In this document: positions 33,901 through 36,655 of the stretch, piece after piece
Position numbering within the stretch: the stretch's first letter is position 1
How the letters are laid out: the number at the start of each line of letters is the position of its first letter
Assembly: GCF_052425735.1 (NCBI RefSeq)
Contig: NC_135765.1
Coordinates: 32,488,001-32,552,000, forward strand
Reading direction: 5' to 3'
Source of the DNA: Oculina patagonica
Taxonomy: Eukaryota
DNA length: 64,000 bases
Translations under genes and position numbers: made by a program
Notes under the pieces: model-generated
The model's database searches: none
Seen by the model: only the letters and a program-made list of their open reading frames with translations
Told to the model about the DNA's origin: nothing

Positions 33901-36655
33901 ACCCCCACCCCCACCTCAAAGCTGGCCAGTGGAGACGCCACAAGCATACTTTGACCATCAAGAGGCTCCAGAGTTTAAAAATGTAGGCATTTTTGTTTTT
34001 TTTTACAGTGTGTGCTACATGTTTGGTGCATTCTGTATGTTGTTTGCCAGTATGTTTATTTTTGCATTTTGTTTGTGTTGATTTCAGTTAGGATTTAATT
34101 TTAATTTGCTATTGTCCTTCCCTGAAACTATTACCGCATTTAGTAACTAGGAAAACCTATTTACCCAGGCAACGTGATCGATATGATATAAAATATCTAC
34201 TTATGTGTGAAGTTCTAAGTAGTGATACATACACTGTTACGTTGCTAGCTCCTGTAAAATTCTGGGTAAGCCAGGCTAGGCTTGTGTTTGTTTAGAGTTA
34301 GCTATCCTTTGTTCTGGTGGCTTGTTATAAGAAGGGATTTTATTTCCATCTGAGACCTGCGAATATTAGCGAAGTTCCACAGCAGCCTCAGAGCGGAGCC
34401 CCATAACCATAGAAAATCCACAGAAATAGGAGAACCATGCATTTGATTTTTCATGGTCATCGTGACTAGCAGCATGGCTCTAGGGCACATGCACCCACTG
34501 TCTGAGGACGTCGCGTAACATAGTTGCCAATCTCCAGAAGAATGGCCACTATGAGGTTATCAAGGAGGCTATCAAGGTTAATATCAGCTAATATCTTTGA
34601 TACTGGGTATCCATGCATGTTATGGTCAATTGACAGCTGTCAATTCAAGGTATCTGCCGAACTCATCGAGGTCACAAATGTTTTTCTTTTAAGTTGACCA
34701 CCAACAACTGTGCCTGGAACGCGACTTATTCCTTATTTTTTCCTGTTTATGCTCAGTGAATTCAGATATTTAATAAAGGGCAAAGTAATTAACCCGGGAG
34801 CTCTGCTTTTAGGCTTGGCTTAATATAATAATTTATTAATACTCTAATTCAGGCATGTGTGATGTTTCCTGTCTCCCAAAGGAACATGGGAGAGTTAATT
34901 ATTCCATTTAATCATTCAGTAGAATTTTTTTAGTTATTTGTAACAGTTTTAGATTTAGCCATAAGCTGATAAGTTTGAAATAATCGAATAATAATACTAA
35001 GGTGAAAAACGGAAACAAATATTCTTGATATAGAGTGTAGTGTAAGTCCTTGGAGAACGTGGGGGACTCCCATTTGAAAAAGAAGTGAGTGCTCATTGTC
35101 TTACCAAGGGGTATACGTTGTTCAGGACAGAACCCCGGAAGCTTTAGTTGTTATAGTCTTGTTATTAGGGTGGCACATGAATAAATAAATACAAAAATCA
35201 CTAATTTAAATATAATCATACTGTGTTGGCAGTATAGAACGGTCAGACGACATGGTCTTTTTTAGAGGTCAACAAATGTGTAAACCACACCCAGTTTGGT
35301 CTCCTTAAGGGGTAATTTATTTCAAATTTTCTGACAAGCATTCCCACGTCTTCATCTGCGAGTCCCCCCTGTCCCCAGGTGTGAAGTACAGTGAAACAAC
35401 TAAATGGATAAAAAATTATGAATAGGGTATAGTGATACTTCTTATTTAAAACGGAGTCAATTTCTTTTGATTTTTGAAGCGATACTATAATCACTGTAAT
35501 AGCATATTAATTCTTCTTAAACTGGTCAATCCTGGACAAGTCTACAACTTGTGAGAATAAGGCTACTGATTGCAGTTTTGCCAATCATAACACAAGGAAA
35601 ATATGGAGACTAACTAGGCTGCATCAACATGAAGTGTTTTTTTATGCTTCAAAATATAATAAAATAAAATATCAGTCCCTGAATAAAACAAATAACTATA
35701 CAGGGTTCGTACACGTCTTGAAAACCCTTGAATTTCAGGAGTTCAATTTCAAGGCGTAAATGAAAGTACTTGAAATTGGTTTTCGGTACTTGAAAGTTCT
35801 TGATTTTTTTATTGAACCACAGCAATACCACACACCACCTGAACACCATGAACCACACGACCACCCTCCACCGCCTCAGCACTATGAACAAGGCAATGAG
35901 AAGACCGCCAAAATAAGCGATTTTTTTAGTTCTTCAGCAAGCACATCAACGTCACAACAGACTGGAAATCGTTGGTTGGAGGTAAATTTCATAAAAAAAG
36001 TCCTTGAAATTTCCAAAAAGGGTCCTGGAAAGTCCTTGAAAAAGTCCTTGAATTTTTGGCCTGAAAAGTGTACGAACCCTGAATATACTTAAGTAGTAAA
36101 GAGACCCTTTTTAGTGCACAGAAATGTTTCTTACTAGATTTTACACTAATGTAAGATATTGATAGTGGGGAGAGTGGAGGTGTGCTAGTGTAACAATAAA
36201 TTTTTTGTAATGAGTAACAACAGAGTAGGAGATCTTGCTTCTGCAGATTGGCAAACGTTTTTGAAGTTATGCATGTTCGTTGCTGCAGGCTTCTATCAAG
36301 AAGGTTGAAATCAAGTATTTGATGTGAAGTGCATACTTTGATGTTGTGTGATCTGATTTCACTCTTAGGTGATCAACCTTAATCTCTCTTCGAGTTTATT
36401 TTTTTCATTTTGTTTGCACTTCAGGAACCGCACATTGAAGAACTAGAAAGTGGAGTATCTGATATGTACATTGAAGATGAGCTCATCGCTGAATTAGACC
36501 CAGTGCTTCAAGACCTTGCTCATCAGCGTGCATGGGAAAGTGGTGAAGTAGATTATAAAGGCAAAGACAAGTTTGACAACATCCAGAAAAGAATTCAGGA
36601 ATTTATCGGAGTGTTGAGGGATCCCACAGATGTCCCCATGTTCTTGTTTTTTTAG
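24993..36655 (+). CDS. GYG1: Glycogenin (GT8 family) with a His/Pro-rich linker exon and C-terminal glycogen-synthase-binding tail
   Basis: Exons 24993-25150, 27169-27506, 28703-28829, 29379-29556, 33215-33982, 36425-36655. Motifs: [46 protein letters not shown] (DxD), [30 protein letters not shown] (autoglucosylation Tyr region), [13 protein letters not shown]. Tail: [22 protein letters not shown]. Confidence 0.93.
27827..28637. mobile_element. PIF/Harbinger-like MITE interrupted by a TA-TSD MITE (28007-28452)
   Basis: Outer TIRs aggctggctttcactagcga ... tcgctagtaaaaaccagcct. Inner element TA-ccttattataggaaattaac ... gttaatttcctatattaagg-TA with many aattaacgcg subrepeats. Confidence 0.7.
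30505..31239. mobile_element. piggyBac-type non-autonomous element (TTAA TSD)
   Basis: TTAA-ccctttcaccacc ... ggtggtgaaaggg-TTAA, with a subterminal direct repeat (taaaggggccacgggtg x2). Confidence 0.85.
33215..33982 (+). CDS. GYG1: His/Pro/Gln/Glu repeat exon of glycogenin (768 nt, phase 0/0)
   Basis: Acceptor cttgtcttgcatAG|caatgc and donor aaaaat|GTaggc. The frame is open throughout: [16 protein letters not shown]...PPPQYH...([19 protein letters not shown])n...EAPEFKN. Confidence 0.75.
35701..36081. mobile_element. MITE (TIR cagggttcgtacac) carrying a captured glycogenin exon fragment
   Basis: TIRs cagggttcgtacac ... gtgtacgaaccctg. 35813-35889 matches 33820-33896 at 72/77 nt. Confidence 0.9.

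Follow-up and report, generated by a model that had tools for sequence, protein, structure and literature searches.

An exon fragment within a miniature inverted-repeat transposable element in the last glycogenin intron of the coral Oculina patagonica

The glycogenin locus and its chimeric element

Within the 64,000-nucleotide (nt) stretch of Oculina patagonica DNA analysed here (hereafter the window; NCBI RefSeq assembly GCF_052425735.1, contig NC_135765.1, positions 32,488,001 to 32,552,000 of the forward strand) lies a glycogenin gene, the last intron of which hosts a copy of a miniature inverted-repeat transposable element (MITE) containing a short piece of the gene's own repeat-rich linker exon. 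The original prediction, made from the letters of the window, had proposed the capture of a piece of the neighbouring glycogenin exon, and the identity of the gene was confirmed by matches at the locus. The open reading frame (ORF) at 27065-27511 matches the Pfam family Glyco_transf_8, and glycogenin-1 structures at E = 4.7e-48, and the exon beginning at 36425 matches residues 275-331 of glycogenin-1, its C-terminal glycogen-synthase-binding tail (E = 5.7e-6); the glycogenin exons were searched individually. The part of the locus that concerns us is assembled twice, on the contig of the window (C8) and on an unplaced contig of 7,273 nt (C64). The features in the window are as follows.

33215..33982, + strand: glycogenin linker exon, the source of the fragment; 256 open codons with His/Pro/Gln/Glu repeats, an AG acceptor and a GT donor
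33820..33896, + strand: donor segment, the last repeat unit of the His/Pro linker exon, running exactly from one TGAAC to the next
33983..36424, + strand: last glycogenin intron, host of the MITE; 2,442 nt
35695..35700: left target-site duplication (TSD), ACTATA
35701..36081, + strand: recipient MITE copy, a non-autonomous element with terminal inverted repeats (TIRs), about 319 nt, lengthened to 381 nt by the insert
35701-35714, + strand: left TIR, CAGGGTTCGTACAC
35813..35817, + strand: left junction, TGAAC, a 5-nt microhomology common to the MITE consensus and the donor exon
35818..35889, + strand: captured exon-derived DNA, 71 nt unambiguous (35818-35888) plus a final C (35889) common with the MITE
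36068-36081, + strand: right TIR, GTGTACGAACCCTG, the reverse complement of the left TIR
36082..36087: right TSD, AATATA, matching the left at 5 of 6 positions and identical on C8 and C64
36425..36655, + strand: last glycogenin exon, encoding the glycogen-synthase-binding tail

The nucleotides at 35813-35889 agree with those at 33820-33896 at 72 of 77 positions, in like orientation and with a start-to-start distance of 1,993 nt. This match, described originally as lying 2 kb downstream of the exon segment and inside TIRs, was upheld both by re-alignment and by a search of the genome. When the 77-mer was compared with the whole 529-Mb genome it had no more than four occurrences, the insert and exon of C8 and those of C64, with E-values from 2.9e-32 to 2.5e-25 (the latter for the exon). 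Because of these E-values and the restriction to four places, the likeness of insert and exon is beyond chance and the assembly holds no other possible donor. The ungapped identity of the insert is 93.5% (72/77) to the exon on C8 and 94.8% to that on C64. On either side of the insert, positions 1-117 and 189-381 of the element match the family and both termini are intact, and there are zero N bases between 28000 and 38000 of the window.

Both junctions can be read against the family consensus, which at the capture site runs ...ATTGAAC/GTCAAAAGGCTT/CAAGGCAATGAG... (slashes marking the limits of the gap, with CAAGGC to its right). The insert stands in place of 12 consensus nucleotides, positions 115-126 (GTCAAAAGGCTT), so that the replacement originally described is real but its size, put at about 14 nt, is 12 nt by the consensus. 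The loss amounts to 3.8% of the element (12/319 nt) and is internal, at a relative position of 0.36. At the left junction the MITE reads ...TTATTGAAC and the exon ...TCATGAAC, with 5 bases in common, and at the right junction exon ...TATGAAC/CCC meets MITE ...GCTT/CAAGG, with 1 base (C) in common. A null expectation for the microhomology was obtained by simulating random donor fragments and random switch points in the MITE, after Tan et al. 2021 (PMC8277862). Of the trials, 0.4-0.6% gave a microhomology of at least 5 nt at the left junction, and 0.8-1.4% gave one at either of the two junctions. The 5-nt microhomology is thus unlikely by chance, and with P at about 0.005-0.01 the proposed entry of the exon sequence at a shared TGAAC has stood up to simulation.

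The second contig is collinear with 28451-37501 of the window, the 3' half of the glycogenin locus, with a difference in length of about 1.8 kb; the best blocks are 92-96% identical with many indels, while other blocks are only 80-82% identical, and over 3.2 kb the divergence between C64 and C8 is about 4%. Either the locus was duplicated very recently or C64 is a diverged haplotig. The MITE, its flanks, the insert and the junctions on C64 are all as on C8, with 8 of 379 aligned positions of the element differing. When the two inserts are compared with the two exon copies, 3 of 77 sites (about 3.9%) separate inserts from exons on both contigs, and the remaining differences are private to a single exon or a single insert; the insert likewise differs from a parsimony-inferred ancestral donor at 3 of 77 sites. 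Outside the insert, the window copy of the MITE departs from the family consensus at 11 of 306 sites (3.6%), and the median divergence of family copies from the consensus is 3-5%. From these divergence figures and the shared insert it follows that the capture took place before the two locus copies diverged, and that its age is about that of the MITE insertion.

Two ORFs may be mentioned. One of 110 codons (window 35760-36092, + strand), the only long ORF of the element, spans the entire right part of the chimeric element, its frame having TGG in the window copy where the family consensus has a closing TGA; a Pfam scan of the 110-aa product gave zero family matches and an exact-protein look-up matched no record. 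Downstream of glycogenin lies an intronless ORF of 323 aa (window 42687-43658, - strand) with an N-terminal hydrophobic segment.

The element family and the direction of transfer

The family to which the recipient belongs has about 190 or more copies of the roughly 319-nt MITE in the genome. A search with the whole element gave 282 first-look candidates, and the right-end 27-mer occurs 187 times with at most 2 mismatches, compared with 0 in the control. The consensus derived from an alignment of 28 copies is 319 nt long, copy lengths ranging from 293 to 345 nt. The ends are 14-nt TIRs, CAGGGTTCGTAC(A/G)C and its reverse complement, which are conserved among copies. Of 20 assessable copies 11 have a perfect 6-bp TSD and five more, the window copy included, have one that matches at 5 of 6 positions; no other TSD length from 3 to 9 was ever perfect in those 20. 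The size, the TIRs, a TSD of fixed length, the copy number and the lack of a transposase gene are all those of a MITE. No autonomous partner of the family turned up, though no systematic search for one was made.

The affiliation of the family was considered with two candidates in mind. Its CAGGG terminus is hAT-like, but membership of hAT is rejected as the TSD is consistently 6 bp and never 8 bp. The GingerRoot superfamily is characterised by a 6-bp TSD, TIRs of 100-150 bp and TG...CA termini like those of long terminal repeats (PMC6839031); the TSD fits, but TIRs of about 14 nt and CA...TG termini rule it out. Some further features of the family were observed. A subterminal motif, (T/G)CCTTGAA, occurs about nine times, in one orientation over both halves and not mirrored, and copies vary by one or two additional CTTGAAAACC units beside the left TIR. 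At G000:C2:43566647-43576953 three right ends of the family lie within 10 kb, all on the + strand and sharing one G-to-A change in the TIR, which may reflect local duplication of one copy and not three insertions.

Another member of the family is present in the window.

21677..21822, - strand: second family member, without the insert; 5'-truncated at about consensus position 92, with an internal deletion of about 92 nt

The original prediction had relied on this reversed copy as an empty reference. It is genuine and lacks the insert, but, being truncated and internally deleted, it is a poor reference, and the consensus of the 28 aligned copies together with 56 pattern matches was used instead.

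The state of the capture site across the genome was established in two ways. In the whole-element search each of the 38 further copies that were scored aligned with positions 1-117 and 189-381 of the element and had about 12 nt separating these two parts. In addition, the genome was scanned with exact-anchor patterns, the bases between two anchors flanking the capture site being counted. Between 5 and 25 nt were found in 56 copies, most with the 13-nt consensus GTCAAAAGGCTTC, whereas this genome-wide exact-anchor scan gave 0 copies with 31-61 nt and 0 with 93-123 nt. The class with 62-92 nt comprised 2 copies, the glycogenin locus on C8 and the same locus on C64. The question of whether other copies carry the insert, raised at the outset, is thereby answered for the genome: the insert occurs at the glycogenin locus only. 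An exact 20-mer over the left junction was also compared with public metagenomes and hit three contigs, none resembling the element, so that these are chance matches.

Since the consensus of this multi-copy family has no exon-like segment, the direction of transfer was from exon to MITE. The capture happened once, before the two locus copies separated, and there has been no later transposition of the chimeric element. The alternative, that the segment is native to the MITE family and that the exon acquired it from a MITE, was tested and rejected and is now hardly credible. All that can be said for it is that 77 nt, and nothing more, are shared. The segment is absent from the 38 scored copies and from the 56 pattern matches, and the consensus, in which its presence would have reversed the direction, was examined and lacks it. 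In the linker exon, by contrast, there is an in-frame tandem array to which the segment belongs as one unit; the spacing of the array is a regular 15/21/36 nt, and its other units match the donor segment at 61-79%. The donor is flanked by this array of repeats and by 86 nt of exon sequence that is unique; these flanks were screened for this MITE family alone, with none found there, and neither the genome search with the element nor the comparison of the contigs found any sequence of the family in the linker exon. For the further suggestion that the same mechanism had built the repeat exon there is accordingly no support, as the exon is an in-frame array free of MITE sequence, and its spacing is of the pattern that slippage or unequal exchange would give.

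Probable templated repair of a broken element and its alternatives

As a whole the observations are very probably best explained by templated repair of a break in a resident MITE, during which a piece of the linker exon was copied. The MITE residing in the last glycogenin intron would have been broken inside the element, and repair would have taken as its template the linker exon, which lies 2 kb upstream on that chromosome; 71-72 nt of the exon's last repeat unit would thereby have been copied. Synthesis would have been primed where ...TTGAAC of the MITE met ...ATGAAC of the exon, with 5 nt of microhomology, and the copied strand would then have been rejoined to the other half of the MITE at the single common C with the loss of 12 nt of the MITE core. 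The pathway that fits is synthesis-dependent microhomology-mediated end joining or gap filling independent of transposition, the polymerase or pathway at work being a matter of inference only. The local templated repair of Pack-TIR style that was originally proposed is thus supported by the consensus without the segment, by the insert at one locus and by the microhomology.

A related route would make the event dependent on transposition. In excision-linked abortive gap repair, transposase cuts out the element and the gap is refilled with a sister or homologous copy as template, synthesis switching twice, first to the exon at TGAAC and then back to a point in the MITE 12 nt beyond. Such repair belongs to the same class of event and is a less likely account. 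Filler DNA in deleted TIR elements, like the Pack-type elements, has classically been explained in this way (PMC8277862, PMC6379663, PMC3814204), and transposition of the family had probably not yet ceased when the exon piece was captured, to judge from its median divergence of 3-5%, the 3.6% of the window copy and the 3.9% or so by which the insert departs from the inferred donor. Free template switching would, however, oddly have returned just 12 nt past its exit at a microhomology of 1 nt, a short re-entry that is natural if both halves of the MITE were already in place. Small internal gaps point to breaks in situ according to Tan et al. (PMC8277862), and the chimera never moved afterwards. 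Repair of a break in situ is therefore somewhat preferred to excision-linked repair.

An artefact, in which exon reads and MITE reads had been joined by the assembler, would account for a chimera that is known from assembled contigs alone and whose two components are both repeats. It is very improbable. An identical chimera with identical junctions is present on C64, which differs at 8 of 379 element positions and by about 4% over 3.2 kb, and misassembly is unlikely because the structure was assembled twice from different molecules. The insert, moreover, has 4-6 mismatches in 77 positions to each of the exon copies and so is not a mis-joined exon read; both junctions are precise, and on each side the MITE half runs collinear with the consensus.

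Of eight independent indel events of at least 4 nt in the family alignment, six fall within consensus positions 82-126, around the capture site, and the right half of the element (190 nt) is almost without indels of that size. In this 45-nt stretch 11-26 nt have been deleted in some copies, about 22 nt are duplicated at the site in copy L003, and a 12-nt filler and a 5-nt insertion occur; four family copies have an 8-nt deletion there between two AAGGC repeats. Copies with indels near the capture site include L008, L013, L017, L027 and L003, examples being found at G000:C7:13106959, C2:19438673, C4:13156785, C5:19791765, C6:36033480 and C12:14934151, and several of the exact-anchor matches bear small deletions or fillers at the capture site itself. 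The cluster of indels and the variable capture site fit an internal region that may be prone to breakage. The fold of the whole element is significant (z = -4.2), yet the break is not placed at an apex.

A number of considerations count against the account of templated repair given here, or against parts of it. The indel cluster was noticed post hoc, and a local hairpin at the break site is no better than in shuffled sequences (z = -1.16), so that a structural reason for fragility is not demonstrated. C64 could have arisen by recent duplication and so not be an allele. The timing rests on 3-11 substitutions, from which capture at the insertion of the MITE and capture afterwards are not separable. 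The chimera is known, as already said, from assembled contigs, and the comparison was made within one genome. As regards the enzyme pathway, polymerase theta usually makes templated inserts of less than 72 nt; typical templated inserts are in general shorter than this one, and their source is within tens to hundreds of bases of the break, whereas here 72 nt came from 2 kb away.

Relation to known captures and a candidate exon

The closest known counterparts are the Pack-TIRs, of which Tan et al. (2021, Nat Commun) described 370 in 100 animal genomes (PMC8277862). The majority were single-copy, and of these 57% lay within 15 kb of the parent, mostly less than 5 kb away; microhomology was present at a breakpoint in 68%, with a median of 2 bp, and the gap in the transposable element was internal, with a median of 4.6% of its length. 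These authors read them as the outcome of transposition-independent gap filling after a break inside the transposable element (PMC8277862). The coral chimera resembles the single-copy class (PMC8277862) in having DNA foreign to the element between the halves of one TIR element, in being single-copy and never mobilised, in having a donor in cis within 5 kb (here 2 kb), in its breakpoint microhomology (here 5 + 1 nt), in the loss of a few percent of the element from its interior, and in its short, non-autonomous host element. By the criteria of that study the parent is unique, matches without gaps at 93.5%/94.8% (at least 90% being required) and lies within the length ratio of 80-120%, and the foreign DNA sits between two parts of one TIR element, each of which reaches its terminus. 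The case behaves like a single-copy Pack-TIR. It differs from the Pack-TIRs of PMC8277862 in that the insert of 71-72 nt falls under the operational minimum of more than 100 bp and would go uncounted, in having 6-bp TSDs where those were mostly hAT or Tc/mariner elements, and in its host, a scleractinian coral, no cnidarian being named in the text of that paper.

The plant Pack-MULE, Pack-CACTA and Pack-TYPE elements are also TIR elements with fragments of host genes for which template switching during repair has been invoked (PMC8903248, PMC6379663). They are often multicopy and mobile, larger, often with multiple fragments, and their donors are usually distant (PMC8903248, PMC6379663), unlike the one short fragment at one locus, without later mobility, described here. 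A further likeness is to the filler DNA of repaired breaks attributed to synthesis-dependent microhomology-mediated end joining, polymerase-theta end joining and microhomology-mediated break-induced replication (PMC2895639, PMC7165422, PMC8421209), which shares an insert copied from nearby, microhomology at the junction and a small deletion. Coral genomes were already known to contain MITEs, the CMITEs of Wang et al. 2010, which are of piggyBac type, about 100 bp long and flanked by TTAA duplications; transduplication was proposed for their internal sequence and no donor was found (PMC2872659). Here, in contrast, the donor is identified, and the element has 6-bp TSDs and CAGGG ends.

There remains the question of whether the insertion of exon sequence could have altered the gene. 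One candidate can be delineated from splice signals and reading frame.

35823..35981, + strand: hypothetical cassette exon, 159 nt open in phase 0/0, bounded by ...ttattgaaccacag and gtaaat

The putative acceptor (35822/35823) combines a T-run of the MITE with captured ...ccacag, and the putative donor (35981/35982) is the MITE's own ...GAG/gtaaat. As the linker exon closes in phase 0 and the last exon opens in phase 0, the segment would be in frame between them. It is nevertheless improbable that the capture created a splice-ready chimeric mini-exon. C8 and C64 both retain the frame and both splice signals, a weak argument as only 8 sites of the element differ, and the divergence of the contigs inside the putative cassette (1/159 nt) is below that outside but not significantly so at the locus-wide rate. 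If the cassette were used, its inclusion would add 53 residues, 25 resembling the His/Pro repeats and 28 derived from the MITE, and these would lengthen the tether between the catalytic domain of glycogenin and its glycogen-synthase-binding tail. Otherwise there is no sign of an effect on glycogenin; no functional effect is indicated, and the chimera is most likely a neutral intronic scar.

The case is a clean example of a repair accident already described in animal genomes and involves no new mechanism, so that the known mechanism is left unchanged. What it adds to the picture drawn from single-copy Pack-TIRs (a donor in cis, microhomology and a very small gap inside the element) is a coral host and a carrier with 6-bp TSDs, and it illustrates that size cutoffs of at least 100 bp overlook small captures of this type. 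The locus is a natural record of templated break repair in which the donor, the product and many unaltered copies are all preserved and both junctions are readable to the base.

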